Virus record (IMG/VR): IMGVR_UViG_3300045970_000794
Location: 298,103-362,102 of that record
Strand: one strand, 5' to 3'
Length of the DNA: 64,000 nt
In this document: in pieces, positions 12,543 through 53,803 of the stretch
Numbering within the stretch: the first letter of the stretch is position 1
Layout of the letters: each line of letters starts with the position of its first letter
The notes under the pieces: model-generated
What the model was told of the DNA's origin: nothing
The model's database searches: none
The model's input: only the letters and a program-made list of their open reading frames with translations
Program-made: the position numbers and the translations under genes

Positions 12543-13460
12543 TTAAATTTTATTATTTCTTACTGAATCTTTTATTTCGATATAAATGGTTGATGCCATT
12601 GGATATTTCTTCGTGACATCAAGTTTGATTTGCTCAATAGTATCTTCAATATCATAAGCTACTTCATCATCTTCAATATCCAATGATAATAATAACATGA
12701 ACTGGTTTTTACCTATGAACATTGTTTGAATCTTATTGATATGTTTTACCATATGATATTGCCCGATAATATGTTTAATATCATTTCTTATTTCCCTCGG
12801 GGCACTCTCACCAATAATTAACTTTCTGAGCTCATTAGAGAGCGTATAAGCGATTATCATCAGAATTAGACCTACAACTATGGAACCGATTGCATCGAAC
12901 ACTGGAGAGACTGTAACAGCTAAAATTGTGGTGATGGCTACAACGATTAATCCGAATAATGCAACCATATCTTCTAGGATAATAACCAATAGGTTTGTAT
13001 CACTAGTATCAATGATTTTACGGAAGAATGAATCCTTACTGATTGTTTTGAATTGATTATAAGCAACTCTGAATGAGTTGAACTCTAAAATGATACCAAT
13101 ACCAAGAACGATGAAGGACCAATAAACATGATGTATTGGTTCTGGCTTTGATAGTTTTTCAATTCCCTCATAAAGCGAATAGAATCCACCAACAAAGAAT
13201 AATAGTATTGCTACCATGAATCCCCAGAAATATTCTTCCTTACCATAACCGAATGAATGTAGTTCGGTTGGAGCTTTAGATGTTCTTTTATTACCAATCA
13301 ACAAGAACACTTGATTGCAACAATCAGCTGTTGAGTGAATGGCTTCGGCCAACATAGCAGTACTAGTAGTAACGACAGCTACAACGAATTTTATGGCTGC
13401 GATGATTGCATTACCAATAAGTGCGACCATAACGGCCTTCATTGAATTAGGTTTAGACAT
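12543..13460 (-). CDS. cation diffusion facilitator (CDF) family transporter
   Basis: AMLAEAIHSTAD, HSFGYGKEEY, ILED, FDAIGS; 6 TM segments plus C-terminal domain. Confidence 0.9.
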   Translation of the reverse strand: MSKPNSMKAVMVALIGNAIIAAIKFVVAVVTTSTAMLAEAIHSTADCCNQVFLLIGNKRTSKAPTELHSFGYGKEEYFWGFMVAILLFFVGGFYSLYEGIEKLSKPEPIHHVYWSFIVLGIGIILEFNSFRVAYNQFKTISKDSFFRKIIDTSDTNLLVIILEDMVALFGLIVVAITTILAVTVSPVFDAIGSIVVGLILMIIAYTLSNELRKLIIGESAPREIRNDIKHIIGQYHMVKHINKIQTMFIGKNQFMLLLSLDIEDDEVAYDIEDTIEQIKLDVTKKYPMASTIYIEIKDSVRNNKI

Positions 13461-13764
13461 TTTGTTTAAGTATTTCTATTAGTTTAATACGCTTAGCTAG
13501 GAACCAAAGGCCACCTTGATTAGTAGGTCTTTTAAATTCTTCGAACTCTTCAATTTCAAGTTTAATCCAGACTCTACCTTTTTCGGATAGATGTGGTGCC
13601 ACTGGCTCTGATGTACAATGCCAAAACGGTCTCACTTTATAACCATTTGTTGGATGACATTCAGCTTCCATCCATTCATTAAATGGAAGGACCTTTGATT
13701 TATTAATGAAGAGTGGTGTTATATCACCATTCTTTTTTACTCTACAAAGTTTATATGCTAGCAT
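13453..13764 (-). CDS. hypothetical phage protein
   Basis: 103-aa ORF, translationally coupled. Confidence 0.65.
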   Translation of the reverse strand: MLAYKLCRVKKNGDITPLFINKSKVLPFNEWMEAECHPTNGYKVRPFWHCTSEPVAPHLSEKGRVWIKLEIEEFEEFKRPTNQGGLWFLAKRIKLIEILKQNV

Positions 13765-14102
13765 TATCTATATATTTTTCTAGTTTGACTATTAATACAT
13801 TTTGGGTTGATGCATTTGTATTCACCGAATATCCCTAGGAATCCGCTACGAACAACTGATGAGCCACATCTAATACAACATTTAGTACTACCTTCACGTT
13901 CCATTCTACTTAATGGTGGTTGTGGTGGTGGAGGTGCAACAATAAATGGTTTAATAACAATTGGTGTCTCTTGTGCCAGTTCTTTTTCAGCTGATTCAAT
14001 ATGTGCGCATAATGCGTAATACCCATTACATTTGGTACTGAAATCGCTTTGAATTTGAAAAGCGAACTGAATGAATTTTAGTGTTTCTAGGTGTAGTTTC
14101 AT
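13764..14102 (-). CDS. hypothetical protein with C-terminal zinc ribbon
   Basis: CIRC...CINPKC. Confidence 0.6.
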   Translation of the reverse strand: MKLHLETLKFIQFAFQIQSDFSTKCNGYYALCAHIESAEKELAQETPIVIKPFIVAPPPPQPPLSRMEREGSTKCCIRCGSSVVRSGFLGIFGEYKCINPKCINSQTRKIYR

Positions 14103-14285
14103 AATATTAGAGTAAAATTAATGAGTAAATGGTCCACATACTTAGTGATTGATAAATTAGTATTGTCCACATATGCTTCTTTATAAAATTATCATTATCC
14201 CCATATAGCATGAAGAGGCCATAAATCCAGCCAACTAACGGTATCAAATAGATTAATTTATTCATTTTATTTAGATTTTTAGTTA

Positions 14286-14615
14286 TTACTTTCTTGGAAT
14301 ATACTCACAATATGAGGTGTGTATACCATTGACACAACCACAATATTTACAATGGGTTTCAGCTTCAACCTCTTTAATAACATCGAATATTGTTAATTGA
14401 TTAGTTGGTTCTTCAGTGTTCTTTTTACAAGTACAATCACTGAATTTAAAGCTTTTAACCAAATTAACTTCACCGCCATTTAATACGTGTTCACTTAGGT
14501 TTTCCTTCCAGATAGTATCAGTATAACAATCTGGCTCACGACATGCGGCAAATGTTGCCCCACAATGACATTTCATTACTTGAATTCGATTCATGTTAAA
14601 GCTTTTTGTAGTCAT
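14286..14615 (-). CDS. Cys-rich hypothetical protein
   Basis: 109-aa ORF with several CxC/CxxC. Confidence 0.55.
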   Translation of the reverse strand: MTTKSFNMNRIQVMKCHCGATFAACREPDCYTDTIWKENLSEHVLNGGEVNLVKSFKFSDCTCKKNTEEPTNQLTIFDVIKEVEAETHCKYCGCVNGIHTSYCEYIPRK

Positions 14616-14796
14616 TTATACCAGTGACCATGAAGTATATCCCAAATAATATAGTTATGACCCATCTATGGGGTTCAACTGTTACATCAGTATTAAGTGT
14701 ACTATATATATATATACGCACCTAGTGTGATACATGATAAGCATCCTAGAAGGATTGAGCCTATTGCAAATATTTTATCTCTCATAATTTATTTAT

Positions 14797-15000
14797 TTAT
14801 TGAAGTTTACCTTTACAAATAACCATATCCAATTCATAGTTAGGTGGAAATTCACCTCGCCAATCACCATCAACGTTATGTTGACCTATATCAAAGCGAA
14901 CTGAATCGGCTATGATACCTTTGATTCTAAGATGGTCTTTAATTATATCAGAAATTTCTTCTGGAGTTAATCTAACTGTTATTTCTTTTTCGATTTCCAT
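14797..15000 (-). CDS. hypothetical protein
   Basis: 67-aa ORF. Confidence 0.55.
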   Translation of the reverse strand: MEIEKEITVRLTPEEISDIIKDHLRIKGIIADSVRFDIGQHNVDGDWRGEFPPNYELDMVICKGKLQ

Positions 15001-15035
15001 GACTATTTTGCTATTGATGTGTCTTTATCTTTAAG

Positions 15036-15218
15036 TTAAAAGATTTTGTTTTTAATATCACTTATAACATATAAAACAAGGCCAATGGCCATAGCAATTA
15101 AGAATATGACTGACTTAGTGTAGAAAATTTCAAAGTCATTGGCGTTAGCATTAACTAATGCTTGGATATAAAACCCAATAAAGAATGCCATTATGAATTT
15201 TGCGATATGTCTTAACAT
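15036..15218 (-). CDS. small membrane protein
   Basis: Two TM segments; follows promoter at 15241. Confidence 0.55.
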   Translation of the reverse strand: MLRHIAKFIMAFFIGFYIQALVNANANDFEIFYTKSVIFLIAMAIGLVLYVISDIKNKIF

Positions 15219-15289
15219 GATTTTAAGTATTAATTTGATGCAAAGATAATACAAATATTTTTAATAACCAAATTTTTTGTGAATTATTT

Positions 15290-15472
15290 TTAAAATGGTA
15301 ATATTTCTTTTGATTGTTCTTTTTCGTATTCCTTTTTGAATCGTTCAAATTCAGCATCAAATCCATTTCTAATAATGACAGCTGGATTGAAATTCTTAGT
15401 TTTCAACCAAGCAATTTTTCCCATTTGCTCAGCTGAAAACCTAATTGATTGAACTTGAGATTTTTGTTTCAT
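15290..15472 (-). CDS. putative ribbon-helix-helix DNA-binding protein at head of cassette array
   Basis: VQSIRFS (strand) + helix + NPAVIIR helix pattern. Confidence 0.5.
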   Translation of the reverse strand: MKQKSQVQSIRFSAEQMGKIAWLKTKNFNPAVIIRNGFDAEFERFKKEYEKEQSKEILPF

Positions 15473-15516
15473 ATTTGTAATACAATTATAACAGCAATAA
15501 GTAAGTTAGTGAGCAT

Positions 15517-15780
15517 TTAAGCATCACTATATTTAATAAACATAGTATCCATGAATTTTTTAACATCATTTAATTCACCTTGATAACATCTTCCCATACC
15601 ACAAATCGTATAAATTGGAAATTCGTTATCTTTTACATTTTCAAATATATTCAAGTTATGCTCTATTACAATCTTATAATCCCTATATGTTTCAATTTCT
15701 TCAATTTTCCCTTTAACAAAACGCTCACTAACATCGTGTATAGCACATTGCTGTTCATTTTTCAAATTATCTTTTTCCAT
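15517..15780 (-). CDS. cassette 1 hypothetical protein
   Basis: Starts inside site 1 (QCAIHDVS encoded by the arm). Confidence 0.7.
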   Translation of the reverse strand: MEKDNLKNEQQCAIHDVSERFVKGKIEEIETYRDYKIVIEHNLNIFENVKDNEFPIYTICGMGRCYQGELNDVKKFMDTMFIKYSDA

Positions 15781-15843
15781 ATTATTAAATTTAGTATTTC
15801 AAATTAAGTTCTCGTTGGCAACGTGCTATACACGCAGCCGTTA
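15729..15843 (+). repeat. attC-like site 1
   Basis: TAAC-at-CGTGTATAGCACATTGC ... GCAACGTGCTATACACG-cagcc-GTTA. Confidence 0.85.
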
Positions 15844-15851
15844 TGTTTAAT

Positions 15852-16016
15852 TTAATTTTTTAACCGCAATTTATCTCCCACCCATTCAAGTTCTATCATT
15901 TCATCATGTTTTCCCTTGTTAATAATATCCAGTGCTGTATCAACATCAGATAAATTGCTAACTACTTTCACCATTTCATCAAGAGTCATACATTTTAACA
16001 TTTCAAGTTTTTCCAT
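15852..16016 (-). CDS. cassette 2 hypothetical protein (54 aa, not in ORF track)
   Basis: MEKLEMLKC...GDKLRLKN*; fills the cassette. Confidence 0.6.
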   Translation of the reverse strand: MEKLEMLKCMTLDEMVKVVSNLSDVDTALDIINKGKHDEMIELEWVGDKLRLKN

Positions 16017-16047
16017 AAGTTTATCTATTAAAAATTAAACTAAAACA

Positions 16048-16160
16048 TAACAACAAATATAAGTTATTATTTTCAGTGTTCCAAATTAAATTATCTGTTT
16101 ATTTATACGTTTGTTTTTTAATTAAGTTTCAGTTATAACAACTTATATTTGCAACCGTTA
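16048..16160 (+). repeat. attC-like site 2
   Basis: TAAC-aa-CAAATATAAGTTATTAT ... ATAACAACTTATATTTG-caacc-GTTA. Confidence 0.85.
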
Positions 16161-16196
16161 GCAGCTATTAAAACAGTACGCTCGTTCCTCGCCTGC

Positions 16197-16457
16197 TAAC
16201 ATCGAATAAGAAAAATAAAAATTACTACTGTTGTGGTTCATCGAGTGGTGGTGGTTTTAAATACCATTTTCCGTTATCATCAACAAAAAAACTTTCAGGC
16301 TTCATCTGTTCATATCCCCAAGAACAAAAACCTTTGCAGTTTTTATTTTCGCATACATTATTAAATTCTCCCCATTCCTGTCCACACAATACACATATAA
16401 GTTTTTTTTCGTGTTCCATATACCGTAATTTTTACATTTTCTTATTCGCAGCCGTTA
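16197..16457 (+). repeat. attC-like site 3 (loop contains a whole gene)
   Basis: TAAC-at-CGAATAAGAAAAATAAAAATTAC ... GTAATTTTTACATTTTCTTATTCG-cagcc-GTTA. Confidence 0.8.
16225..16419 (-). CDS. small zinc-finger-like protein nested in site 3
   Basis: CVLC...CENKNC. Confidence 0.65.
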   Translation of the reverse strand: MEHEKKLICVLCGQEWGEFNNVCENKNCKGFCSWGYEQMKPESFFVDDNGKWYLKPPPLDEPQQ

Positions 16458-16670
16458 GGCGTAATTAAAAGTAATCCTAACTTTAGCCTTAAATTCTCTA
16501 TATCCGTTTTCGTTTTCAATAGTCATTTCTTGTAATATGTCCTGAATGAATATCAGTGCATCATCTGTTATTTCAGTTCCTTTAGGGTAAGTCTTTGAAT
16601 AACTACGCCTAACACCACCTATATTTAATTGCTGGCTATCTGCGTTATTAAAGGTCTGTTCGTTGTTCAT
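16455..16670 (-). CDS. cassette 4 hypothetical protein
   Basis: Starts in site 4 loop (QLNIGGVR); its stop TAA is the TTA of the cassette's GTTA. Confidence 0.7.
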   Translation of the reverse strand: MNNEQTFNNADSQQLNIGGVRRSYSKTYPKGTEITDDALIFIQDILQEMTIENENGYREFKAKVRITFNYA

Positions 16671-16734
16671 AATTTCGTGTAATTTGATAGTTTAGTATTT
16701 CAAAATCAGCAACTAAACATAGCTGTAACCGTTA
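16610..16734 (+). repeat. attC-like site 4
   Basis: TAAC-ac-CACCTATATTTAATTGCTG ... CAGCAACTAAACATAGCTG-taacc-GTTA. Confidence 0.85.
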
Positions 16735-16741
16735 GCAACAA

Positions 16742-16951
16742 TTAGTGCTGCCCATACCTCAAATGAATGTTATCATAATCTGTATCGTGATAAGCACCGT
16801 TCTCTTGTTTATGTTTCTTTATACATTGATATAAGTATATTTCGGTTAATCCTACCAAAGAACAATCACCTTTATCCCAACTATTATACAGTTGTTTAAT
16901 CTCATCATCGTTCAAATCTAATAAACTTTCTATTGTGTTCTTTTCATCCAT
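16742..16951 (-). CDS. cassette 5 hypothetical protein
   Basis: ATG at 16951 (MDEKNT). Confidence 0.6.
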   Translation of the reverse strand: MDEKNTIESLLDLNDDEIKQLYNSWDKGDCSLVGLTEIYLYQCIKKHKQENGAYHDTDYDNIHLRYGQH

Positions 16952-16966
16952 AAATCTAACTGTTGC

Positions 16967-17052
16967 TAACAAGCAATATATGTAATTGCCTATTAAGGTT
17001 TGTAAAATTTTTAAATTTTGTGCAAGGCAACTACATATATTGCCAACCGTTA
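16967..17052 (+). repeat. attC-like site 5
   Basis: TAAC-aa-GCAATATATGTAATTGCC ... GGCAACTACATATATTGC-caacc-GTTA. Confidence 0.85.
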
Positions 17053-17059
17053 GGTTCAA

Positions 17060-17353
17060 TTAAATTATTGTTTTGATTTTATTTAGATAATCAATATATC
17101 GAGAAGATGAACCGCTACCATACAATTTTTCAGCTTTCTCAGACATACCATATAAAGATATTAAAAAATAATCACCATATTCAGATGCTTTGTTCCTAAA
17201 TCCCCACATTTCATGTTGTCTTATCTGAAATTCATCTTCAGTGAGGTTATCCATATCAATAAATAATTTATCGTATGCTTCCCAAAATTGTGTCATCACA
17301 ATTCTAACTTCTTCTTTTAATTCTTGTGAAGTTGTTTGTTCTCTTATATTCAT
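17060..17353 (-). CDS. cassette 6 hypothetical protein
   Basis: 97-aa ORF filling the cassette. Confidence 0.7.
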   Translation of the reverse strand: MNIREQTTSQELKEEVRIVMTQFWEAYDKLFIDMDNLTEDEFQIRQHEMWGFRNKASEYGDYFLISLYGMSEKAEKLYGSGSSSRYIDYLNKIKTII

Positions 17354-17389
17354 ATTTTTTAATTTGTAAAATAATTATTTAACTAAACC

Positions 17390-17437
17390 TAACAAATGAT
17401 AAACAACATTAAAACGATTGTTTATCATCGGACGTTA
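17390..17437 (+). repeat. attC-like site 6 (minimal, 48 bp)
   Basis: TAAC-aa-ATGATAAACAA-cattaaaacga-TTGTTTATCAT-cggac-GTTA. Confidence 0.8.
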
Positions 17438-17458
17438 TGGCTCATTAAAACGAAGCCA

Positions 17459-17950
17459 TAACAGCAAATATAACCAATGCTGTCAGTGCTTCGATTTAAG
17501 TTTTGCGATTAAAAGTTTTTAAAAATTGCCATCGCACTTAAAAAGTTTCAAGTATTTTTCCTGTTGGTTCAACAAAATCAATTACACTTGTTTCACCATT
17601 TTCTTTTTCTACACCTATTTGCCCAGTTAACCTAGAATTAATAGTTTCAAATTTATGCAATTCGCATCTAAAAGAAAATGTATCTTTTAACTTGGTTTGC
17701 AACTCAACATTCCAACCGTCATTGGATTGGTCAAACAAATGGTTCAATGCAAATTCTTTAACAATCAATTTAACCATTTTCATTCTTAATGATTTTTTAC
17801 TTTTTACTTTCATACTTTTAATTTTAAATTTATATAAATATAATGTTTTTATTTAAGATAATCAATATTTTCTCACGCTATTTTTAAAAACTTTTTTGCG
17901 GTGTTTCAATTAAGCATTAGTGTTAGCACTGGTTATATTTGCAGCCGTTA
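17459..17950 (+). repeat. attC-like site 7 (loop contains a whole gene and an inner 16-bp inverted repeat)
   Basis: TAAC-ag-CAAATATAACCAATGCT ... AGCACTGGTTATATTTG-cagcc-GTTA. Confidence 0.8.
17538..17813 (-). CDS. hypothetical protein nested in site 7
   Basis: 91-aa ORF. Confidence 0.65.
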   Translation of the reverse strand: MKVKSKKSLRMKMVKLIVKEFALNHLFDQSNDGWNVELQTKLKDTFSFRCELHKFETINSRLTGQIGVEKENGETSVIDFVEPTGKILETF

Positions 17951-17953
17951 TGG

Positions 17954-18223
17954 TTAATTACCAATTCCAGCTTTGCATTTTGGACATTTAATATAACTAT
18001 CATGATTGTATCCGCAAAATGAACACTTACGTAATGGTAACTCAACCATAACATTAGATAAATCCAATTTTTTGATGTCATTAATTAAGCACAAAACTTC
18101 GTCTGCCCTTATATTATACGTTAGTGCATGGATATAATTATTTGCTTCGCTATTTATTTTTTCGTTATCTTTATAGTCACGAAGTTTTTTTTCCAATTCA
18201 TTAATTATTTAGTCTTTTTTCAT
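17954..18223 (-). pseudogene. cassette 8 gene with C-terminal zinc ribbon; in-frame TAA at codon 5
   Basis: ATG AAA AAA GAC TAA ATA ATT AAT GAA TTG...; could alternatively initiate at TTG 18196. Confidence 0.5.
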
Positions 18224-18261
18224 ATAATTCATTTTAAACTGTATTTATCTGAGTACCGTTA
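18049..18261 (+). repeat. attC-like site 8 (degenerate arms)
   Basis: TAAC-at-TAGATAAATCCAATTT ... AAACTGTATTTATCTG-agtacc-GTTA. Confidence 0.7.
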
Positions 18262-18543
18262 GTGGCAATTTTCTATGAACAGTCTAAACTTCTTACCATC
18301 TTTGGAAATAAATTCGATTGAGTTAGTATTTTGTTGTAAATTATCGTCTAACTCTTTTTGCTGTTGCATTTCTATTATAATTTTTCCGTAATCATGAATT
18401 GTCGCACATTCTTGTGGCTCATCGTTATCGAATTTAAACATAAGCCTTCCAGTTTGGTTAGCAAGTTTAAAACTGCCACTAACATCAGCTATATTCAATG
18501 CCGAGTTCTGTGGCGTAATTGAGTTTTGTTCTTCGTTTTTCAT
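18259..18543 (-). CDS. cassette 9 hypothetical protein
   Basis: Starts in site 9 loop (ALNIADVS); stop within GTTA. Confidence 0.7.
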   Translation of the reverse strand: MKNEEQNSITPQNSALNIADVSGSFKLANQTGRLMFKFDNDEPQECATIHDYGKIIIEMQQQKELDDNLQQNTNSIEFISKDGKKFRLFIENCH

Positions 18544-18603
18544 TTTATCTGTTTATTAAATTTTGAAATACAAAATTGGCACTAAATATAGCTGTAAACA
18601 TTA
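18480..18603 (+). repeat. attC-like site 9 (core G replaced by A)
   Basis: TAAC-at-CAGCTATATTCAATGCC ... GGCACTAAATATAGCTG-taaac-ATTA. Confidence 0.8.
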
Positions 18604-19575
18604 TACCCCATTTAAGAGCGACCCGAAAATGTGAGCGATTATATCAACAGTCCATCCGTTTCCGAGCATTTTTTTTGATTGGCTTTCTGAAACAATATCA
18701 GTAAAGTAATTTTCGGGAACTGTTTGTAATCTGCAATACTCTTTCAAAGTGTAATATCTAAATGGTAGCTTGTTTTTAAAAGCGTCCTTATGCCTACCTA
18801 TTGGCATTGTAGTTAAAACATTGTCTTTTTCAACAGTAGTTAGGCAGTTGCTTTTATTAGTGTTAGTTGCTCTTACTTCCAAGCATTGCGTAATCGGTAC
18901 ATCTTTGTTGTAGTCATCTCTTACACCTCGCTCATTCAATCTTCTACCTAAAATAGTAGCTTTATTCAACCTTCGCCCTCTTATTGCACTTGGGTTAATA
19001 AAATCGTCAGTTTCAAGTATATCAATAAGGTTTATTGCTTTGTCGGTTGGCTGTGTAATTTCAAAGTTTGCCCAATACAAACGAACCCTATTTTGTGCAG
19101 TAACTAAGCTACTGTTAATCGCAACAGGTTCAACCCCTAAATACTCGCTAATTACTTGCTCATATTCTTTTTTCATTACTACATTTTCAAGTAACCAGTA
19201 TTTAGGTTTCAATTCTTTAACCAATCTAACAAACTCAAAAAATAGTTTGCTTCGAGGGTCATCAAAGTTTAACTGTTTGCCACTAAAACTAAATCCTTGG
19301 CATGGGCTACCTCCAATCAATAAATCAACTTTAGGTAAGTCTTTTGCAAATACTTTAGTTACATCGCCTAATTGTATTGTTTTCGGGTAGTTGGTTTGTG
19401 TTACTTTAATAGCGTGTTTATCAATCTCACTCGCAAAGTAGTTATCATATTCAATCCCAACTCTATTAAGTGCTATTTGTCCACAACTCATTCCATCAAA
19501 AAGAGAAAGAACAGAAGAAAAACGGGGCATAACACCGTGTATAGGTAATGTGGGGTTTTGTGGTAATTCAATCAT
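18601..19575 (-). CDS. dcm: DNA (cytosine-5)-methyltransferase (cassette 10)
   Basis: LSLFDGM, EID, GGSPCQGFS, LENV, QNRVR, LGNGW motifs. Confidence 0.92.
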   Translation of the reverse strand: MIELPQNPTLPIHGVMPRFSSVLSLFDGMSCGQIALNRVGIEYDNYFASEIDKHAIKVTQTNYPKTIQLGDVTKVFAKDLPKVDLLIGGSPCQGFSFSGKQLNFDDPRSKLFFEFVRLVKELKPKYWLLENVVMKKEYEQVISEYLGVEPVAINSSLVTAQNRVRLYWANFEITQPTDKAINLIDILETDDFINPSAIRGRRLNKATILGRRLNERGVRDDYNKDVPITQCLEVRATNTNKSNCLTTVEKDNVLTTMPIGRHKDAFKNKLPFRYYTLKEYCRLQTVPENYFTDIVSESQSKKMLGNGWTVDIIAHIFGSLLNGV

Positions 19576-19653
19576 TTGTTCTCGTATTTAAGTTATTACT
19601 ATTTTGACAGGGTAGTGCTTCGTATTCCCACACTACCCATACACGAAACGTTA
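19530..19653 (+). repeat. attC-like site 10
   Basis: TAAC-ac-CGTGTATAGGTAATGTGGG ... CCCACACTACCCATACACG-aaac-GTTA. Confidence 0.85.
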
Positions 19654-19664
19654 TAAGTAATTTA

Positions 19665-19946
19665 CTAAATGTTTGGATGATTAGTAAAACATTTATTGCA
19701 TTGTTGATTATTTCTACTTATTTGAATTAATTCACCACCACAATCACATTTATTAAACATACTTATAACAGTAGGTATATTCAAATTTTTAACTCGTTCT
19801 TGTTCGTATTTAATACCTTCATCAAATGCTTCCAAAAACCAACCAAACCATTCGTCTTTAGCCATTTCACCACGCATATCTTTTGTTGGTAAATCGTCAA
19901 TTATCTTATTAATTATTTTATTTTTATCCATTTTAATTTCCTCCAT
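19665..19946 (-). CDS. cassette 11 protein with C-terminal zinc ribbon
   Basis: NLNIPTVI motif across half-site at 19766; CDCGG...CNKC. Confidence 0.65.
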   Translation of the reverse strand: MEEIKMDKNKIINKIIDDLPTKDMRGEMAKDEWFGWFLEAFDEGIKYEQERVKNLNIPTVISMFNKCDCGGELIQISRNNQQCNKCFTNHPNI

Positions 19947-22900
19947 TGTTAAGTAATGATTTTATGCCCTCATCTTTTAAAAGTAAGAGCATAATATCTA
20001 ATTCATTTTCTGTTATTGTTTCTTCGTCAAGTTCTGCTAATGACAAATACAATCTACGTTTTAAATCTAAAATTTCATCCATGTTAAATATCACCTTTAA
20101 GCCACAATTTATAATCATCTTCTGTCATTCCCAAATATGCTGATAAACTTAAAGTACTATCAGAATTATGCCATTCATCAATCTTATCATCAATGGTATC
20201 ACCAATGGTTTTAACATATTTAATTTTTAGATTCATTTCAATGGTGTGTTCTACCTGAGTAATCGCCCAGTCAATTTTATCAACATCCATTTGGTCAACA
20301 GCATCATTAATTGGTAAATCCAAATAATAATTAGAATACATTCTTTTAAACATTAAATGCTGCTCTTCAGTGCATTTAGCTAGAAGGTCTTTTAGAATAG
20401 TCTTAGCAGCTTTTATTAAAGTTTCGTTTTTCATATTATTTAAATAAAAGATTAAATAAATAATAGACTGGAGTTAGGAATGCGGGTGTTACATACAACC
20501 ACAATAAAACAGATACCCACCCTTCTTTATTGAATTTATACCTATCAAAAATATTAATATTTTTATTTTCGTCTTCTAGTGCCCACATAATTACGAAGCA
20601 ACTAACTACTAATGTATATCCCCACATATTATTTTATATTAAATTATTAAATATCATTTTCATCATCAATCACCCACCACATGAAACCACAGGCCAATCC
20701 AATTACCACTACTTGTATAAAAATTTCCATCATTATTTTATATTAACCAAAGTTTGTTAAAGTAATATATCTGATTATCAGTCAGATTCTTAACCCATTC
20801 ATCAAAATAGATATGATACTTAATCGAATTGTTTTCATACCATTCATATCTCAAATATTGATATAGCCTATCATTCATACTAATACAAATCAAAATCATC
20901 ACCAACAATTATCCACCATAGGACAATCAATACACCCATAAACATCATTAATTCCATGAGTTAAACTGTATTAATATTAAATTTAATAAGAATTACCATC
21001 TTCAACCAATCGTAAAACATTTCATCAGTGAACGATGCAGTCTTATCATCATTAGTTCTATAAACCGATTGACCATTTACTCTATAGAATAGGTCATAAT
21101 AGATTTTTAGAGTAACACCATCTTTACTGAAAACAACGTTGTTGAACTCACCGTCAGTTGGTGAATACGCTATACCGTATTTCTCTAAGGTAGTAACCAA
21201 TTTATTTATTGTATGCTCAAGTTTAGTAATTGGTGCCATTTTTATATATAATAAAGGTGAATATATTGTTTTTTATATGTTACCATTCCACTGCTATAGT
21301 GATGAAAATGAAATTCTCTAGTTATATCATCCTTATAAAGTTGATATGCGTAATCGACATCCATTAATTCTTTAGTTCCCATAATAAGATTAAATTAATT
21401 TCTACAAAGATAATACAAATAAGTTAATAAAACAAATTTTCTATCAAATATTTTTCATCTAAAATTTTGCGTGGGATTCCATGGCAGTCTAACCAATAAT
21501 GTATGATAATGTCAGTGAAGGGACTAATATTCCCAAACTCACCTTGCATTCTTCCATTTTTATCTGGAACCCTACCCATAAGTTGGTCATCTGTTAGTAA
21601 ATTCTTACGTTCTTCCCACGTCAATTCTCTATAATAATCCTCTTCATTCACTGAACTTATGACTTAACCTCAAATAAATCTTCGATATCATCATCATAAA
21701 TCCAATTAAGGGCTTCTTCAGCTCCACGATAGATAAGGTTATCTTCATCCATTTCTTCCCAATCACCTTCATTAATGTCCTCAAGGTTAGTTGAACCATC
21801 AAGAATTGATATCTTAGCATCAATGATTAAATGGTTAGGGTTACGAAATGTACTATACTCTGGTAGCCAAGTTTTCATGGCGGTTAAGCCATCAATTTGT
21901 CTTTGAATTGCTGCTTCTGTTCTCATTTTTGAAACGTTTATTAATAATACTTAAAACTTTATATAATATGAACAATACTAAAACTGAATCTACTATTGGC
22001 CATAAAATTGATAATATAATATAAGGTGTGACTCCATCGTCTTCATAATCATCTACATCGTAAGTGCTTTTAGCATTACTATTACCAATATTAATACTCC
22101 TAATAACCATTAGGAATATAAAGGTAACTACGAACCCGATAATATATGTTACTATGTATGTCATCACTCATTTAATTCTTCAATTATTGTATATTGTACT
22201 GGCGTTGATAATTCGATTTTATAACCATTAGTATTTCCACCATCGAATGTGTAAATGTTATCATAAAATAAATATGCGCCATCATCGATTTTGCAATCAT
22301 CACAATTAATTATTTCATCAAAAAGAAACCAACTGGTAGCACCACCAGTTAGCATTACTCTAACACGAAAAATCTTCTTTCTTCGATTCAAATATTCCGT
22401 TCGGAAGAAACCATTCATTACATGGGATTTGATTTGGTCAGCAGTTAAGCTTTCCTCACGATTTTCGGAACGATATAAACCATCATCACCTTTAAGCCAT
22501 AGTGAATCCCCATTCCTAGTTTTTGTAATGTCACGATATCCTATTTTATCCATATTTCCCATAATTTAATATTTTTATTATAATTTTTTCCAAGTAGAAT
22601 CTGGAATTTCATCTGGTTTTCTAAGATTATTGATAATTCCAACTTTACCATTATCCAATTCAAACCAAATAAATTTATTTTCTATGAATATACGAACAAT
22701 TTTATTAACGCCACTATCATATCCATATGAATATGTTCCACCCCATTCTATAGTATCACCAACACATATTTTACCATAAACAATGTGATTAGCTTCATTA
22801 ATACTATCTATACCCATTATTTTCCAATCTAATTTATCTTTCATAATTAAATTTTTACCAAACAAACCAAATAAAATACAAAGGTCCACCTATTACCATC

Positions 22901-25900
22901 AAACCTAATAGAGTCCAACTAGCTGATGCTACCTTATACCATAAGTCTTCTCTTACAGTATCATAGTCCATCAAGGACCAAGTAGCCGATGCTATTAATA
23001 AAAGAGTAAGTGTAATTGTTGAATATATTTTAAATTCTAACATGATTTTTCTTTTAAATAGTTTTTAAATTTGATTCTATCCTTTGCTTTTAATTCCTTA
23101 CCATTCCTTCCAACGTGAAATTTAAAGCACTTATAGCATTTATATGCAACAACTTTATGAATAATATGTGGTTTTGAATTAACATGCTTAGCGCATATAA
23201 TAGCTTCTTCCAATGTATTAAACTTCTTCTTTGGTTTCATCAGTGGAATACCAGTTTTAAAATCATAATGAATAATTGTTTCACATTCCATAACCTATTC
23301 TTTATTAATAGCCACCATTTGATTCTTCAAACCAACAATTGCTTTAGTTCTCATTGCTCTACTTAATAAAGCACCGCCAGAGGCAAACATTGTAATGCTA
23401 CAACTGTCTTTATTCCATTCTTCCATGGATTTAGTACCAGTCTTTTCCATTTCATTAATTAAGTCAAGGAATAAGTCTTCTAACTCTTCCCTTGTATAGT
23501 TTATGAGGTCTGTTCTTTCCATGAGTTAAATTTCCCCTCTATATTTTATTAATAATTTACTGAGAGACCTTCTTGTCTGATATTCTTTATCATCTTCACC
23601 ATCTAACCTATGGTTTGGTGAACCAATGAAGAATTCAATTTGCTCTGGTGAAAGATTCAATTGTCTCAACATATTAAGCTTATTTGGTGCTCCATTAATA
23701 TAATCCATATCAATAGTATCCAAGTAATCTCTATGATAATTACGAATCAACATCGGTTCTGGTTCACCAATAGGTCTTCCATTTAGAAAGTTACCATTAG
23801 CTTTAAGTTCATTGATAGCACCCTCATCCAGAGGTCTAACAACACCTTTATCAACACCATAAGCTTGATTACCATCACCAACAATAATAACATTATCTTG
23901 GTCCTTCAAGTGTTCAGCCGCCCTTAAAACCATTTCTGGGATATTATCATGTGGTGGAACAACAAGCACACCAATATTTTCGGGTTGTATTCCGATATAA
24001 CCACCGCCAATAAGGGAAGGGCCAGCAACACCAATTTTTTTTATTCTATTTTTAGCAATTTCCATGATTAATCTTTTGTTAATAGTAAACTAATAGCATT
24101 CATAGCTAAACCGAAATGATTATTAAACTCTTGGTTTGTCACTTCAACATATTCACCTGGTGCTATATCAATTTCAACACAATCATTTGTATCAATCATA
24201 ACATTACTATTGTTTTTACGGACATCAATTATAATACCGTCAACAGCTGCATGTGTTAAACTATAAATGTGTCTAATTTTAGTAATTTTGATTAGCTTCG
24301 TATTATTTAATTTATAACATTGACCAATAATATTGGGGAATGTCTTCATTAATTCTTTAGTTTCATCTTCATCAAGCTTTAATATTGCTTCATGAAGCTT
24401 TCGTCTTTCAGCTGAATAGTCCATTTAGTTATAAATTTTCAATTTCAGCTTTAACACCATACCAAAACACTTTACCAGTTTCAGCAATCATTTCGTCAGC
24501 AACAGCTGTTGCAGCTGCTTTAACTATTGCATTAGCTTTTTCAAAATCGGTTATTGGTTCTGGGAATATTATCCCAGCAAATTTAGCAAATAATTGCTTA
24601 GCTTTATCTCCCATCTTGTTTAATATTTAAATTTTATTAATGTAAAAGTTATTTTCACAGAGTCTATTGCCTTTACCTAGCTCAACGTTCTGTTCAACTA
24701 TGTCACGAATCATGGACTCTGTGATTATGAATTCTTTCTCGTCTTGATTCTGATATTCTTCATCAGTCATCTTATCATTTTCAATGAAAAATTGGACTTT
24801 AAGTACTGGCTTCATGTTAATTAACGTTTTCTCTTGTTGATAATATTTCTTTAATCTTATTATAGTAATAAGTTAAACCATTGAATTCTCTATAATCATC
24901 AATAACAGCAATAAGCTTATGGTCAATAACATTACCTTGGTCATAATCCCAAACAATTAGTTTAGCAACATCAAATGGATGCGTTATTGGCAACGACTCT
25001 ATGTTTCGATTAAACAGTGCCGATTGTTTAGCGGTTACTGACCTCTTCAAAGCTAAAAGCCTTTTAGTATCAAGCTTATTTAATTGAGCTTCATTTAAAA
25101 ATGTAATCTCTTTTTTCTGTGACATGATAATTTTATTTAAAGTTTAACAATAAAGCATCCATTTTTTAATTTGGTTAATTGTTTCAACATCTTCAACTAG
25201 CTTAACAGTTTTAATCATTAGTATGTGTAAATCGAAATTAATTTTAGTTTCAATACCATTACGTTTACCAACTTCAACAGCCACTACCTTATAAGCTAAC
25301 CTATCAAGGTAAATCTCTTTGATTTGGAAATAGTGTACACCATCATCCAATGGTCCCATTTCAACTATTTGGTCTATATTACATAACCAATTTGGTCTGA
25401 ATTCAATTATACAACCATTTAACCCATTTTTATTACCACTCTTAATGGTAACATTAGTGATTTCGCAAGCCATGATATTATTTAATTAAGTCTTTAAACA
25501 TTTTATCCGAAATTTTCTGATATGTAGCAGCCAATTTAGTCTGTAAGAATTTGAATGAACGTACAATTGGGTCATGAACTACAAACCATACTGCTGAAAA
25601 AGGCCAGTAACTCATCCAAACAAGGATTCTACTCTTATTACGCCAGAAGCTTATCTGTTCAGCATATACTTTATTACCATTTTCTTTACATTTAGCTCTT
25701 AAATCATTCAAAAATAGATACCATTTAACGAATGACCATACTACACCTAGTAATAAGTAACCTAAAAATACACCTATAATAGTAAATGGATTATCAATTA
25801 TCCAACTACCAGCGGATAAATAATCTTCTTTACCACCAAAAACACCAGTAAAAACAAGAAAACCAATAAGGAGTATGGTAGCTCCAGTTCCACTTTGTTC

Positions 25901-32230: not shown

Positions 32231-32619
32231 ACAAATAAACCCTTTTCAACCAAATATGTTACATTCATTGATGTTGCAACAACCCAAAATGTATGCGTTT
32301 TTCTTGGTTCAAACATTGGTGGTTCTGGTTCACTATACCCAGTGGCACCGTAATTATAAGCCGATGAACCTGGTGTATACCAACCTTCAATCTTTTTGGT
32401 TTGACCAATTATAATACCATCCATTGTTTTATGTGGTTGAAAGAGAAGTTTCCTGTAAGCACACCCATACTTTGGTCCATCAATAGTTTCTTTCGGTTTA
32501 ACAATATCAAGCACCATACCTTCGTATGTCCTGTCAGACATTTCATTTTTAATGTATACAGCTCTAGAGAAGCTAACATCAAATTGAATCGCTCTACCAA
32601 ATAATTTATGTTGTTTCAT
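32227..32619 (-). CDS. hypothetical protein
   Basis: 130-aa ORF, coupled. Confidence 0.65.
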   Translation of the reverse strand: MKQHKLFGRAIQFDVSFSRAVYIKNEMSDRTYEGMVLDIVKPKETIDGPKYGCAYRKLLFQPHKTMDGIIIGQTKKIEGWYTPGSSAYNYGATGYSEPEPPMFEPRKTHTFWVVATSMNVTYLVEKGLFV

Positions 32620-32837
32620 AACATCGATTTTGATTTCATTAATATATCCCGACTATTTGTTGGGACCGCACCAGCATTCATTGCTTTGCTTCTAATCCAC
32701 TTATTTGTTAAATCATAGTGTGGGTGACCTTTTCTTACTCCGTGGAAGTAAATACGCTTTAAACCGATGCTACTGGCAAATGCATGTAACTCAGCTAGTG
32801 AATCAGCAACCATATGTACTCCATCAGTATAAATCAT
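32616..32837 (-). CDS. DUF4031 domain protein
   Basis: HMVADSLAELHAFA..IGL, HYDL. Confidence 0.85.
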   Translation of the reverse strand: MIYTDGVHMVADSLAELHAFASSIGLKRIYFHGVRKGHPHYDLTNKWIRSKAMNAGAVPTNSRDILMKSKSML

Positions 32838-37344: not shown

Positions 37345-38439
37345 ATGATAACTAAAACACAAAATTTCATATTAAAAGCAAAGCATATTCATGAAGATAA
37401 GTACGATTATTCATTAGTTGAGTATAATGGTTCTTATTACAAAGTTAGTATAATATGTAAAATACATGGAATATTTAAGCAATCACCAAATAATCATTTA
37501 AATGGGCAAGGCTGTGCTATTTGTGGTCGAATTAAAACACAAGCTAAACAAATGTCTAATGTTAATGATGTTATAGCTAAAGCAAAATATATTCATAAAA
37601 ATAAATATGATTATTCATTAGTTCAATATAAAAATGAAAAAAGTAAAATAAAAATAATATGCCCAACGCATGGTATTTTTGAACAAACACCTGATAATCA
37701 TATTAATAATAAAACTGGGTGTCCAAGTTGTAGTTGTAATAAAAAATTAACACCATTAGAGTATATTACAAAAGTAAATTTAATTCATAAATCCAAATAT
37801 AATTATTTAATTATGAATTATTGTGGTGTGAATAAGAAAATAAAAATAATATGCCCAATTCATGGTGTGTTTGAAATTAAAGCCTCTCACCACGCTAGCG
37901 GTGTTGGTTGCTCTAAATGTTCAAATAAACATAAATATACTACCAATGAATTTATCATTGAGGCTAGTAAAATTCATGGAAGTAAATATAGTTATAAATT
38001 GTCTGAGTATTTAAATGCGAAAACTAAAATAATTATTACTTGTCCAATGCATGGTGATTTCATGCAATCACCAACATCACATTTAAGTGGTAAAGGATGT
38101 CCAACATGTAATGAAAGTAAAGGTGAAAAAGCGATTAGAAATTACTTAAATAAACATAATATTAGCTTTATTCCTCAACATAAATTTAATGATTGTAAAA
38201 ATATTAAACCATTGCCGTTTGATTTCTATCTTCCAGATTATAATACATGCATTGAATACCAAGGTGAACAACATTATAGACCAATTAAACGTTTTGGTGG
38301 TGTTAATGCTCATGAAAAATTAAAAGAAAACGATAACATTAAAAAAGAATACTGCGAATCACACAATATTCTTTTGATTGTCATATCAAATATAAATGAA
38401 GTGATTTATAATTTAAAAAAATTAATCATAAAACCGTAG
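37345..38439 (+). CDS. putative homing endonuclease: DUF723-like zinc repeats + PD-(D/E)xK/Vsr-like nuclease domain
   Basis: Repeats of YDYS..Y...K..IIC..HG.F.Q.P..H..G.GC..C; FDFYLP...IEYQGEQH. Confidence 0.8.
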   Translation: MITKTQNFILKAKHIHEDKYDYSLVEYNGSYYKVSIICKIHGIFKQSPNNHLNGQGCAICGRIKTQAKQMSNVNDVIAKAKYIHKNKYDYSLVQYKNEKSKIKIICPTHGIFEQTPDNHINNKTGCPSCSCNKKLTPLEYITKVNLIHKSKYNYLIMNYCGVNKKIKIICPIHGVFEIKASHHASGVGCSKCSNKHKYTTNEFIIEASKIHGSKYSYKLSEYLNAKTKIIITCPMHGDFMQSPTSHLSGKGCPTCNESKGEKAIRNYLNKHNISFIPQHKFNDCKNIKPLPFDFYLPDYNTCIEYQGEQHYRPIKRFGGVNAHEKLKENDNIKKEYCESHNILLIVISNINEVIYNLKKLIIKP

Positions 38440-39220
38440 CATTCTTACTCCAGAAATCTACTGATGCCAAATACTTTTCTTTATTCAATGGAACTCCAGA
38501 ACCACCACACATCACACCTTGAAGACTTAATATTTCTCGAATATCTTTATTGCATACACCTTCGTCTGGCACTTCTATTAAATTAGCAATTTCATCAACA
38601 CCTTTTTCTATTAACCCCATTATCTGTTCAACAGCTATCTTTTGAAATTCTTCAGTGTTATATCCAGCATTCCTAATCATAGTCTCTGGCTTCATATGCT
38701 CTTCATTAGGATGAGATTGACCAAGAATGGCAACAATACCCCAATCAGCATCAAAACCGAATATTTCAGTAGCATTATCCTTACCTTTAGATTCAATTTC
38801 AATTTGTTCTTTTGAATAAAGGACCAGTACCAACCACTCAGCTATTGGTTTACCAAGAGGTAATTCCAACCAGCGAGAGAATATTGGTAATTCATCATCA
38901 GTTCTAGGTGAATAACCACTTCTTAAATACTGATAATTCTCAAGGGTAATAGGCATTGAACCGACCTTGACATCTGTAAAATTTGGTACAACTAATAATT
39001 TACAAAATGGAGCATATCCCTCTATAATTCTTGCATTACCAAGAATCGTTTTAAAATGATTATCACCATTTAATTTAATAATAGTATTCATATCTTCAAG
39101 GCATCCAAATCCAGTAGTTAGTATCGCTGTAAATTCTTCAATAGTCATATTCAATACCTTAGTACCACCAAAGTTTTTATCAAAATGTCTGTATGCGAAA
39201 TCGGTTACTTTAATATTCAT
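38426..39220 (-). CDS. DUF3228 family protein
   Basis: GYAPFCK, LRSGY..R...ELP...RW, LYSKEQI, GGSGVPL. Confidence 0.8.
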   Translation of the reverse strand: MNIKVTDFAYRHFDKNFGGTKVLNMTIEEFTAILTTGFGCLEDMNTIIKLNGDNHFKTILGNARIIEGYAPFCKLLVVPNFTDVKVGSMPITLENYQYLRSGYSPRTDDELPIFSRWLELPLGKPIAEWLVLVLYSKEQIEIESKGKDNATEIFGFDADWGIVAILGQSHPNEEHMKPETMIRNAGYNTEEFQKIAVEQIMGLIEKGVDEIANLIEVPDEGVCNKDIREILSLQGVMCGGSGVPLNKEKYLASVDFWSKNATVL

Positions 39221-39714: not shown

Positions 39715-39976
<262 letters not shown>

Positions 39977-53691: not shown

Positions 53692-53803
53692 CCCTTTGTT
53701 ATTAATAGTTACGGTCTCTAATGATACTAGCACCTATTTAAAATTTAAATTTTTTACCATGTTGGTAAGGTTTATGTTATTAAGTAAGATTTAATAACAA
53801 GTT

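Follow-up and report, generated by a model that had tools for sequence, protein, structure and literature searches.

The window analysed here is a 64,000-nt stretch (positions 298,103 to 362,102 of IMG/VR virus record IMGVR_UViG_3300045970_000794) of a 362-kb phage genome. It contains an array of ten full hairpin sites and one half-site on the + strand at 15729-19790, together with small ORFs that are all on the minus strand (Table 1). Each site reads TAAC, 2 nt, a 12-bp stem with T-A-W-A at positions 5-8, an unpaired A at position 13 (A13), about 6 more bp, a loop, the mirror arm, 4-6 nt (mostly CARCC) and GTTA, with one exception at the right end of S9. Positions are counted from 2 nt after TAAC. 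Below, names beginning with L denote loci from other phages that were retrieved for comparison, and an arrow within GTTA marks the cassette junction.

Table 1. Features of the array (window coordinates)
Position	Strand	Feature	Observations
15489..15508	+	Left end of the array: mini TAAC...GTTA element	GTTA at 15505-15508 is followed by GTGAGC; GTTAGTGAGC is complementary to GCTCAC-TAAC at the left of S1; no further sites lie to the left
15517..18543	-	Small cassette ORFs: 15517-15780, 15852-16016, 16455-16670, 16742-17059, 17060-17353, 17954-18196, 18259-18543	No Pfam or PHROG match
15729..15843	+	Site S1 (115 nt)	TATA box; 12/12 stem; A13.C; fold -12.45 kcal/mol (+) against -14.35 (-); loop 88% identical to a site in huge phage LR756500.1
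16048..16160	+	Site S2 (113 nt)	TATA box; 12/12 stem; A13.C; the whole site, and only the site, is 73-82% identical to sites in 11 other phage loci
16157..16200	+	Short empty inter-site unit, GTTAGCAG...CTGCTAAC	8-nt complementary flanks; unexplained companion of S3
16197..16457	+	Site S3 (261 nt)	TAAG box; position 13 is A.A; a 64-aa ORF (16225-16419, minus strand) lies inside the loop
16610..16734	+	Site S4 (125 nt)	TATA box; A.C at positions 8 and 13; 86.5% identical to an L010 site
16967..17052	+	Site S5 (86 nt)	TATA box; 12/12 stem; A13.C; fold z-score -4.4 (+) and -3.9 (-)
17390..17437	+	Site S6, short 48-nt class	TAAA box; no variable loop; A13 lies in the loop; 100% identical to an L072 site; same class as P12002L_attC1 of Qi et al. 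2023
17459..17950	+	Site S7 (492 nt)	TATA box; 12/12 stem; A13.C; a 91-aa ORF (17538-17813, minus strand) lies inside the loop
18049..18261	+	Site S8, variant with spacers 2/6	TAAA box; 10/12 pairs; A13.C (aligned by hand)
18480..18603	+	Site S9 (124 nt)	TATA box; A13.C; right end is ATTA instead of GTTA; contigs of another metagenome break off exactly at 18601, reading ...AAACCG↓TTA
18601..19575	-	Cassette ORF: C5 cytosine DNA methyltransferase	PF00145, E 6e-41; likely true start is the ATG of GTTATG at 19530; stop TAA lies in the TAAT of S9; a 91%-identical copy in sequencing run X3 has different neighbours on both sides
19530..19653	+	Site S10 (124 nt), spacers 2/4	TATA box; A.C at positions 8 and 13; 91% identical to an L110 site; foreign contigs diverge at 19653/19654
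19766..19790	+	Half-site S11, left arm only (TAAC AG TAGG TATA TTCA A)	TATA box; left flank TACTTATAAC pairs with GTTATAAGTA after S10

A first-pass annotation, made from the sequence alone, had claimed that these sites conserve structure and not sequence, with a fixed TAWA box, an invariant A13 that usually faces C, and co-variation elsewhere. This observation is confirmed, both in the window and in a larger sample. The annotation had named the loss of the position-13 pattern in a larger alignment as a result that would refute it, but the pattern persists. In 133 unique sites from about 34 phage contigs, position 5 is T in 128, position 6 is A in 126, position 7 is T in 107 or A in 22, and position 8 is A in 115. 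Position 13 is A in 127 sites; it faces C in 101 and G or A in 24, and is Watson-Crick in only 8.

The two arms are offset by exactly 3 nt. In the pooled sequence of this genome and all retrieved loci, 158 pairs occur at spacers 2/5, against 10-44 for other offsets. To test covariation without circularity, we chose 77 sites by their end motifs alone. Variable stem positions are Watson-Crick in 57-74 of these 77 sites, against 19-43 with shuffled partners.

The annotation further noted that most mismatches are A-C on the + strand, which correspond to T-G wobbles on the minus strand, and inferred that only the minus strand folds well. At positions 1-12 of the larger sample, mismatches are A.C or C.A 91 times and G.T or T.G 7 times. 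A comparison of folding energies between strands had been proposed as the check on this inference. The minus strand is more stable in 113 of 125 sites with DNA parameters (mean -2.0 kcal/mol) and in 119 of 125 with RNA parameters. The statement that only the minus strand folds is nevertheless too strong, since both strands form the same hairpin. Within the window the effect is modest: of six sites tested, four favour the minus strand, S5 favours the plus strand and S9 is equal. In addition, about 18% of sites in the larger sample have A.G or A.A at position 13, which is not a wobble on either strand. The constant feature is therefore a mispaired A (T on the minus strand), and not a wobble.

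The flank after each GTTA pairs with the flank before the next TAAC. This complementarity spans 8-24 nt in the window, and across 101 neighbouring pairs the mean is 3.9 of 6 Watson-Crick, against 2.4 with shuffled partners (maximum 2.75 in 200 shuffles). Thus, as in an integron, the outer box of a site is complementary to the other end of the same cassette, and not to the adjacent one.

Cassettes that are shared between phages begin and end exactly at G↓TTA. Homology blocks between contigs end at the right GTTA (offset 0 to +12) in about 34 cases and start there in about 8. A 370-nt cassette of this genome (15486-15855) is 94% identical to one in L051, and is bounded GTTA...GTTA in two different contexts. 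The methyltransferase cassette of the window breaks at 18601 and 19653 in other metagenomes. The crossover thus corresponds to the G↓TT of the right-hand core, with the cassette moving as a unit that holds one site, although these data do not place the exact phosphodiester bond within GTTA. Nine homology blocks end about 13 nt inside the left arm instead of at GTTA, and site sequences recur beside unrelated ORFs, so exchange, or site acquisition, at the left end also occurs.

Related phages differ by whole cassettes. L037 and L054 are 99% identical, but L054 has two extra cassettes inserted exactly at the G↓TTA of a conserved attI-like site about 50 nt upstream of a 268-aa tyrosine recombinase gene, and L037 has one extra internal cassette bounded by G↓TTA. 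The cultured Polaribacter phages Freya_1 and Freya_10 differ by 12 small genes inserted at G↓TT 45 nt upstream of their integrase, and this insertion ends in a TAAC..TATA..GTTG site. No circular cassette or excision junction was seen in the phage studied here, for which the sequencing runs were examined as contigs only.

The tyrosine recombinase domain PF00589 is present in 7 of 20 array-bearing, mostly fragmentary records and lies beside the array in 6. Three contexts that were chosen by the protein alone all carry arrays and the attI-like motif. This motif, ATATATART..TA↓GTTA, lies 30-50 nt upstream of the recombinase start in L007, L072, L242, L244, L245 and this genome.

The recombinase is Xer-like. 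It has a SAM-like N-terminal domain (PF13495) and a catalytic domain (PF00589) with the R-K-H-R-H-Y residues, and its best solved relative is P. abyssi XerA (4a8e), with which it aligns over residues 17-263. LRVSEL, GKGRKDR, HTLRHS, GHSN and IYTHV are visible in the alignment. By contrast, it lacks the IntI-specific additional domain between patches II and III: against VchIntIA (2a3v), it has 29 residues where IntI4 has 77. The integron integrase model TIGR02249 scores 150 bits, below its cut-off of 265, and matches in two pieces, while NF040815 (XerA/integron integrase) scores 184, below 220.

The phage studied here has no intact copy of this gene. There is no PF00589 match in the 362-kb genome, and only a 116-aa N-terminal remnant (PF13495) occurs at genome positions 15083-15433, with the attI-like site and beside a second small array. 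The system is therefore probably inactive in cis, and the array in the window is an orphan, CALIN-like one that may be a fossil.

The sites resemble integron attC sites in several ways. They are imperfect palindromes that conserve structure and not sequence, with conserved AAC/GTT ends that form a paired outer box, an unpaired spacer next to this box and a variable terminal loop (sites of 48-126 nt), and one strand folds better. An attI-like insertion point lies next to a tyrosine recombinase gene that points away from the array on the top strand, and site families are homogeneous beside unrelated ORFs. However, they are not canonical attC sites. An attC site has two or three extrahelical bases on the R''-L'' arm of the folded bottom strand, but here the arms pair in register beyond the spacer through position 19 with no bulged base, and the irregularities are a 5-against-2 internal loop and fixed mismatches at positions 8 and 13 and flank position 7. 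An attC site also has an unpaired central spacer of near-equal length between the R and L boxes and a GTT-type L box; here the spacer is 2 nt against 5 nt, and a T-A-W-A box sits 6 nt from TAAC where the L box would be. The canonical geometry was not measured here. Finally, the ORFs are on the strand opposite the top strand in all 23 arrays (19,826 against 1,982 aa), and cassette boundaries place each site 5′ of its ORF, the reverse of a canonical integron. The system is carried by lytic-type and jumbo phages, not bacteria. No Rfam family matched at E-values up to 1; the curated attC covariance model (IntegronFinder / HattCI) was not run on these sites, although HattCI did call one member of this family in Polaribacter phage P12002L.

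It is very unlikely that the array is an ordinary bacterial integron fragment (CALIN) picked up from the host and served by a host IntI. In favor of this idea, the TAAC/GTTA ends match the AAC/GTT of attC, and Qi, Rajabal, Ghaly, Tetu and Gillings (2023, PMC9892861) reported CALINs in virulent phages, often beside DNA methyltransferase genes, including P12002L, which carries members of this family. However, arrays of this type are essentially absent from bacterial genomes: a scan of bacterial and archaeal genomes (185,579 species; at least 120 matches) found arrays only on two short contigs of one MAG bin. Base composition equals that of the phage, and the linked recombinase, site structure and ORF orientation also argue against this origin. 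The study by Qi et al. used canonical attC models on 10,705 NCBI phages, found only 2 or more sites per phage, and reported no phage-native recombinase, attI-like site or distinct structural code. P12002L_attC1 was written there in the orientation that we find to be the bottom strand, and was the site that IntI1 did not recombine. It is the one published family member tested; its failure fits a different enzyme, but is not positive evidence for one.

Overall, we consider it most likely (probability roughly 0.8) that the sites are attC-like recombination sites bounding mobile gene cassettes, in an integron-like system that is native to phages probably infecting Flavobacteriia (Bacteroidota) and that uses a Xer-type recombinase and not a true integron integrase. 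In this view, a cassette on the + strand runs from the TTA of one GTTA to the G of the next, and holds a flank, a minus-strand ORF, the complementary flank, TAAC, the hairpin, CARCC and G. In a circular cassette the two flanks would extend the TAAC/GTTA stem, as the R box does in an attC. The phage-encoded recombinase of about 268 aa would exchange cassettes at G↓TTA between sites, and between a site and the attI-like site upstream of its own start codon. The substrate is most likely the folded minus strand, in which the 5-nt against 2-nt internal loop next to the TAAC/GTTA box, the TAWA box and a mispaired T at position 13 (usually G.T) would play the part of the unpaired spacer and extrahelical bases of attC, fixing strand choice and polarity.

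The first-pass annotation had likened the minus strand to the recombinogenic bottom strand of attC, and proposed recognition of a single-stranded DNA hairpin with a conserved distortion. This interpretation is supported in part. The better-folding minus strand is also what integron convention calls the bottom strand, because the junctions lie at G↓TTA at the right end of each site on the + strand. Our data demonstrate the structure, covariation, strand asymmetry, junction positions, cassette presence or absence between near-identical phages, and linkage to the recombinase, whereas single-stranded DNA as the substrate, the cleavage chemistry and the roles of A13 and the bulge are inferences without experimental evidence.

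The minus strand is also the mRNA strand in all 23 arrays, so part of the constraint could act on RNA. We regard it as unlikely, however, that the hairpins function mainly as processing, terminator or translational-control stems in the polycistronic minus-strand transcript, with the DNA junctions being secondary. In support of such a role, the mismatches become G.U wobbles in the sense strand, with an energy gain of -5.8 kcal/mol under RNA parameters, four ORFs in the window can start at an ATG inside a loop, and loops carry conserved motifs such as AACTTAA. On the other hand, RNA function does not explain precise cassette gain and loss at G↓TTA between 99%-identical phages, the pairing of each site's outer flank with the far end of its cassette, the attI-like site or the adjacent recombinase. 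A13 is also kept mispaired even where a Watson-Crick pair would be more stable, and in 79 of 94 cassettes the ORF starts downstream of the site. The two explanations can coexist. The ORFs within the loops of S3 and S7 do not fit easily with the recombination model.

Two further possibilities, that the sites are regulatory repeats shuffling genes only by homologous recombination or that the variable region is cargo next to the attP of a lysogeny integrase, also appear very unlikely. In their favor, some cassettes share a conserved 5′ UTR plus an 18-codon leader and then diverge inside the ORF, whole sites recur beside unrelated ORFs, and the integrases of Freya and Ingeline phages were interpreted by their discoverers as lysogeny genes. 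By contrast, the arms differ between sites yet stay paired, which homologous recombination neither needs nor preserves, and junctions fall in a 4-nt box and not at variable points within long identity. Moreover, a 362-kb phage with terminal repeats is an unlikely temperate phage, and cassettes also differ at internal array positions. The PeSL (promoter-early stem-loop) cassettes of T4-type phages (Arbiol et al. 2010) are similar in that small ORFs in hyperplastic phage regions are each preceded by a stem-loop and are shuffled as modules. However, PeSLs conserve sequence and are thought to act through homologous recombination, with no dedicated recombinase, covarying arms or fixed 4-nt junction.

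Xer recombinases act on folded or modular sites in the CTX-phi single-stranded attP hairpin with XerCD and in the pdif modules of Acinetobacter plasmids, although we did not test this relationship. These share with the phage system a Xer-type enzyme, a possible single-stranded hairpin substrate and modules bounded by short recombinase sites. They differ in using host XerC/D and dif-like 28-bp sites, whereas here the enzyme is phage-encoded and the sites are long covarying hairpins with TAAC/GTTA ends.

A broader reading, which we consider slightly more likely than not, is that phages of Bacteroidota carry their own integron analogue, with a Xer-derived recombinase without the IntI domain, an attI-like site and hairpins with a separate structural code (3-nt bulge, TAWA box, mispaired T13), that arose independently of, or as a sister to, bacterial integrons. 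The variable loop, being 5′ of the ORF, may supply the promoter or start codon. Under this reading, the arrays serve as exchangeable banks of counter-defence genes. DNA methyltransferases, a Tad3-type Thoeris inhibitor, NAD-salvage enzymes and ADP-ribosyltransferases were seen among the cargo.

The phage genome is a 362,102-bp IMG/VR virus record with direct terminal repeats and about 30% G+C, and the window is its right-hand 64 kb. Nearly all genes are on the minus strand. The best protein matches are to phages of Maribacter, Cellulophaga and Flavobacterium, so the host is probably a member of the Flavobacteriia. The source is a pond metagenome.

The window contains ten full sites (S1 to S10) and one half-site, all on the + strand. 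Each reads TAAC, 2 nt (A then W or C), a 12-bp stem, a mispaired A at position 13, 4-6 further pairs, a loop of 0 to 450 nt, the mirror arm, 4-6 nt (mostly CARCC) and then GTTA. Positions 5-8 are TATA, TAAG or TAAA. Position 13 is A in every site and faces C in eight of them. The arm sequences differ from site to site but stay complementary. The first-pass annotation had described a conserved structure with a fixed TAWA box and an A at position 13 that mostly faces C, and this description is accurate. An Rfam scan of positions 13000-23000 at E-values up to 1 returned only two chance-level hits.

To learn whether the pattern holds more widely, we used a probe from one arm (TAACGGYTGCAAATAT), which recovered arrays of the same sites in about 30 IMG/VR contigs of 5 to 430 kb. 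A DNA similarity search had already found an array in the 462-kb huge phage LR756500.1. In 133 unique sites the arm offset is strictly 3 nt, with 158 hits for spacers 2/5 against 10-44 for other offsets. Position 5 is T in 128 sites, position 6 is A in 126, position 7 is W in 129, position 8 is A in 115 and position 13 is A in 127. Loss of the position-13 pattern in a larger alignment had been named in advance as evidence against the first-pass annotation's reading, but the pattern persisted: A13 faces C in 101 sites and G or A in 24, and is Watson-Crick in only 8. To avoid circularity, we re-selected 77 sites by their end motifs alone. Variable stem positions were Watson-Crick in 57-74 of these 77 sites, against 19-43 with shuffled partners, and position 13 was A.C in 63. 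These partner-shuffle statistics were used in place of a formal covariance model.

Mismatches inside the 12-bp stem are of the A.C type 91 times and of the G.T type 7 times. A second systematic A.C occurs at position 8 (about 45%) and a third at flank position 7 (62 of 101). The minus strand therefore folds better. A comparison of folding energies between the strands, which had been suggested beforehand as a check, favored the minus strand in 113 of 125 sites with DNA parameters (mean 2.0 kcal/mol) and in 119 of 125 with RNA parameters. However, the effect is modest in the window, where it favors the minus strand in S1, S2, S4 and S10, is absent in S9 and is reversed in S5. The asymmetry argues against a symmetric cruciform as the functional form, and points instead to selection on one single strand.

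Four lines of evidence bear on the nature of the sites. First, the flank to the right of each GTTA is complementary to the flank to the left of the next TAAC. This complementarity spans 8-24 nt in the window and averages 3.9 of 6 across 101 neighboring pairs, against 2.4 for shuffled partners. Such pairing is the hallmark of integron cassettes, in which the inverse core of an attC pairs with the core remnant at the other end of the same cassette.

Second, homology between different phages starts and stops at the right-hand GTTA. A 370-nt cassette of this same genome is 94% identical to one in L051 (numbers with the prefix L denote retrieved loci), and is bounded GTTA...GTTA in two unrelated contexts. 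The window's methyltransferase cassette recurs at 91% identity in another metagenome. Its neighbors there differ, and the match breaks exactly at ...CCG|TTA and after the GTTA of S10. No excision joints were found for this phage in the sequencing runs, which were examined as contigs only. Nine homology blocks end about 13 nt into the left arm, and whole sites recur beside unrelated ORFs, as with VCR homogeneity, which leaves the way in which sites are joined to genes undecided. In addition, cassettes in four phages (L010, L076, L100 and L109) share about 180 nt, consisting of the 5′ UTR and the first 18 codons (MKLRKFIATTIREYLNEQ), and then diverge abruptly inside the ORF. This is a second kind of mosaic junction.

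Third, whole cassettes are gained and lost. L037 and L054 are 99% identical, but L054 has two extra cassettes inserted exactly at a G|TTA about 50 nt upstream of a recombinase gene. L037 has one extra internal cassette, which is again bounded by G|TTA.

Fourth, a recombinase is linked to the arrays. A PF00589 tyrosine recombinase is present in 7 of 20 array-bearing records, most of which are fragments, and in 6 the gene lies beside the array. Three further contexts were retrieved by the protein alone. All show a run of small genes with these sites that ends at a conserved motif, ATATATART..TA|GTTA, just upstream of the recombinase start. The cultured Polaribacter phages Freya_1 to Freya_10 (MT732463.1 / MT732472.1; L246-L249) range from 43,978 to 48,920 bp. 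Relative to Freya_1, Freya_10 has 12 extra small genes inserted at G|TT 45 nt upstream of the integrase, and the insertion ends in a TAAC..TATA..GTTG site. Our site scan missed the Freya sites because they end in GTTG with an offset of 2, and one was found by eye. The Freya series is a possible laboratory model that makes the proposed system testable.

Given that the junction is at the right-hand GTTA, the + strand corresponds to the integron “top” strand and the minus strand to the “bottom” strand. We had at first assumed from gene orientation that the coding strand is the top strand, with attC 3′ of the ORF, but the junction analysis rejected this. The bottom strand is the better folder, as the first-pass annotation had proposed by analogy with attC; its interpretation of the sites is partly supported. 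In all 23 arrays, however, the ORFs lie on that same bottom strand (19,826 against 1,982 aa). Each site therefore travels 5′ of its ORF, the reverse of a canonical cassette. Because the folding strand is also the sense strand, an explanation at the level of RNA is not excluded. Stop codons cluster 0-20 nt before the next TAAC in 55 of 94 cassettes. ORFs usually start downstream of the site (79 of 94), although in the window several can start in the loop. A Bacteroidetes -7 promoter motif (TAnnTTTG) was not found in the loops on inspection. A loop motif, AACTTAA, is enriched but was not interpreted. S3 and S7 have a complete small ORF inside the loop between their paired arms. Each is preceded by an empty 29-36-nt GTTA...TAAC mini-hairpin, and the 29-nt one has the loop sequence of the 48-nt site class.

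The recombinase is 262-271 aa, with an N-terminal SAM-like domain and a catalytic domain. It aligns end to end with Pyrococcus XerA (4a8e). Against Vibrio IntI4 (2a3v), it aligns in two pieces and has 29 residues where IntI4 has 77, so the IntI-specific insertion is absent. NCBIfam scores stay below the cut-offs for both the XerA/integron-integrase model and the integron-integrase model. The structure of the recombinase, alone or in complex, was not predicted. The absence of the IntI domain matches the absence of extrahelical bases in the sites, because in the VchIntIA-VCR structure that domain is what reads those bases. The family is abundant in metagenomes, with more than 5,000 homologues at E below 1e-20, all annotated simply as XerD.

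A six-frame PF00589 search of the 362-kb genome gave no match. This result was misleading, because a remnant of the recombinase keeps only the N-terminal domain. A tblastn search found it as a 116-aa ORF that carries only PF13495 and is 59% identical to residues 10-117 of the intact 268-aa enzyme of related phages. The attI-like motif (GATATATAGTA|GTTA) lies upstream of the remnant, followed by a short array of three sites. The window's array lies about 59 kb away across the genome ends and has no recombinase of its own. It is thus an orphan array in a phage whose enzyme is truncated, and it could move only with help in trans.

Coordinates of the sites, cassettes and other genes discussed in the text
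Feature	Sequence	Coordinates	Strand
Array of ten full sites and one half-site	Window	15729-19790	+
Site S3, with ORF in loop	Window	16197-16457	+
Site S7, with ORF in loop	Window	17459-17950	+
Methyltransferase cassette	Window	18601-19653	
Cassette (370 nt) shared with L051	Phage genome	15486-15855	
Truncated recombinase	Phage genome, outside the window	15083-15433 (L241:3083-3433)	minus
Three-site array upstream of truncated recombinase	Phage genome	15768-15854, 16292-16384, 16683-16771	
Cassette segment shared with L076, L100 and L109	L010 (oriented coordinates)	1314-1504	
Sites flanking DNA methyltransferase and Mom-like genes	Polaribacter phage P12002L, NC_028924.1 (L240)	32491-32695, 38035-38090, 38879-38936	
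Reverse transcriptase gene (RVT_1, phrog_1423)	Window	52726-53733	minus
GIY-YIG endonuclease gene, next to the reverse transcriptase gene	Window	51319-52146	
Homologues of translation initiation factor IF-3 (both domains) and of an RNase R/II-type exoribonuclease (RNB, CSD and S1 domains)	Window	54502-55020 and 45309-47234	minus
Cation-efflux (CDF family) transporter gene	Window	12543-13460	minus
TTA/ATT trinucleotide repeats	Window	about 39740-39780	

Qi et al. 2023 (PMC9892861) screened 10,705 NCBI phage genomes with canonical attC models and reported 17 CALINs, including one in Polaribacter phage P12002L. We found that P12002L carries members of the present family beside methyltransferase genes. 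The P12002L_attC1 primer of that study is a 48-nt-class member that is written in what we find to be the bottom-strand orientation, i.e., opposite to the polarity that the junctions indicate. It was the one site of six that IntI1 failed to recombine. The study described no phage-native recombinase, no attI-like site and no distinct structural code. Bartlau et al. 2021 (PMC8776804) read the Freya and Ingeline integrases as signs of lysogeny. Further literature searches found no description of the system.

We therefore regard the system as working like an integron without being a member of the IntI/attC family. Nothing in this reading is experimental. The defining features that hold are the AAC/GTT ends, cassette-specific R-box pairing, the G|TT crossover, the variable loop and an attI beside the recombinase. 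By contrast, extrahelical bases, spacer geometry, ORF orientation and the IntI insertion do not conform. Canonical attC geometry was represented in this comparison by attC_aadA7 and VCR, and no attC model was run. Integrons are treated as bacterial devices defined by IntI and canonical attC, whereas here a second cassette system with the same logic but different parts appears to be widespread in environmental phages. If this is right, it gives a natural comparison for asking which structural features of a folded site determine strand choice and polarity, and it offers a mechanism for the fast turnover of small accessory genes in large phage genomes. It would also suggest that phages stock counter-defence genes in arrays, as bacteria stock defence genes in chromosomal integrons. 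Finally, it would warn that attC finders can call these sites in the wrong orientation, and that “integrase” in such phages need not mean lysogeny.

Among 46 larger array ORFs (from L004, L039, L075, L076 and others), 15 Pfam families matched. They include C5 and N6 DNA methyltransferases, a Tad3 Thoeris inhibitor, the NAD-salvage enzymes NAPRTase/NAMPT, ART-PolyVal ADP-ribosyltransferases, PAPS reductase and a MazG-like protein. These matches hint at counter-defence cargo, although some of the large ORFs may be core genes lying between widely spaced sites. The window's small ORFs have no match.

A scan of bacterial genomes with a 16-nt site probe returned at least 120 loci, which were mostly chance hits, as 104 of these 120 lacked a site. 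Two short contigs binned into a Methanolobus MAG (L170 and L219; JAVEPM010000176.1 and JAVEPM010000139.1) consist almost wholly of these arrays, with about 10 sites each. They are probably phage DNA mis-binned into an archaeal genome.

The window also encodes a reverse transcriptase, whose type (diversity-generating retroelement (DGR), retron or group II intron) was not determined, and phage-encoded homologues of IF-3 and of an RNase R/II-type exoribonuclease. The transporter gene of the CDF family lies about 2 kb to the left of the array. The run of trinucleotide repeats appeared as noise in the site scan.
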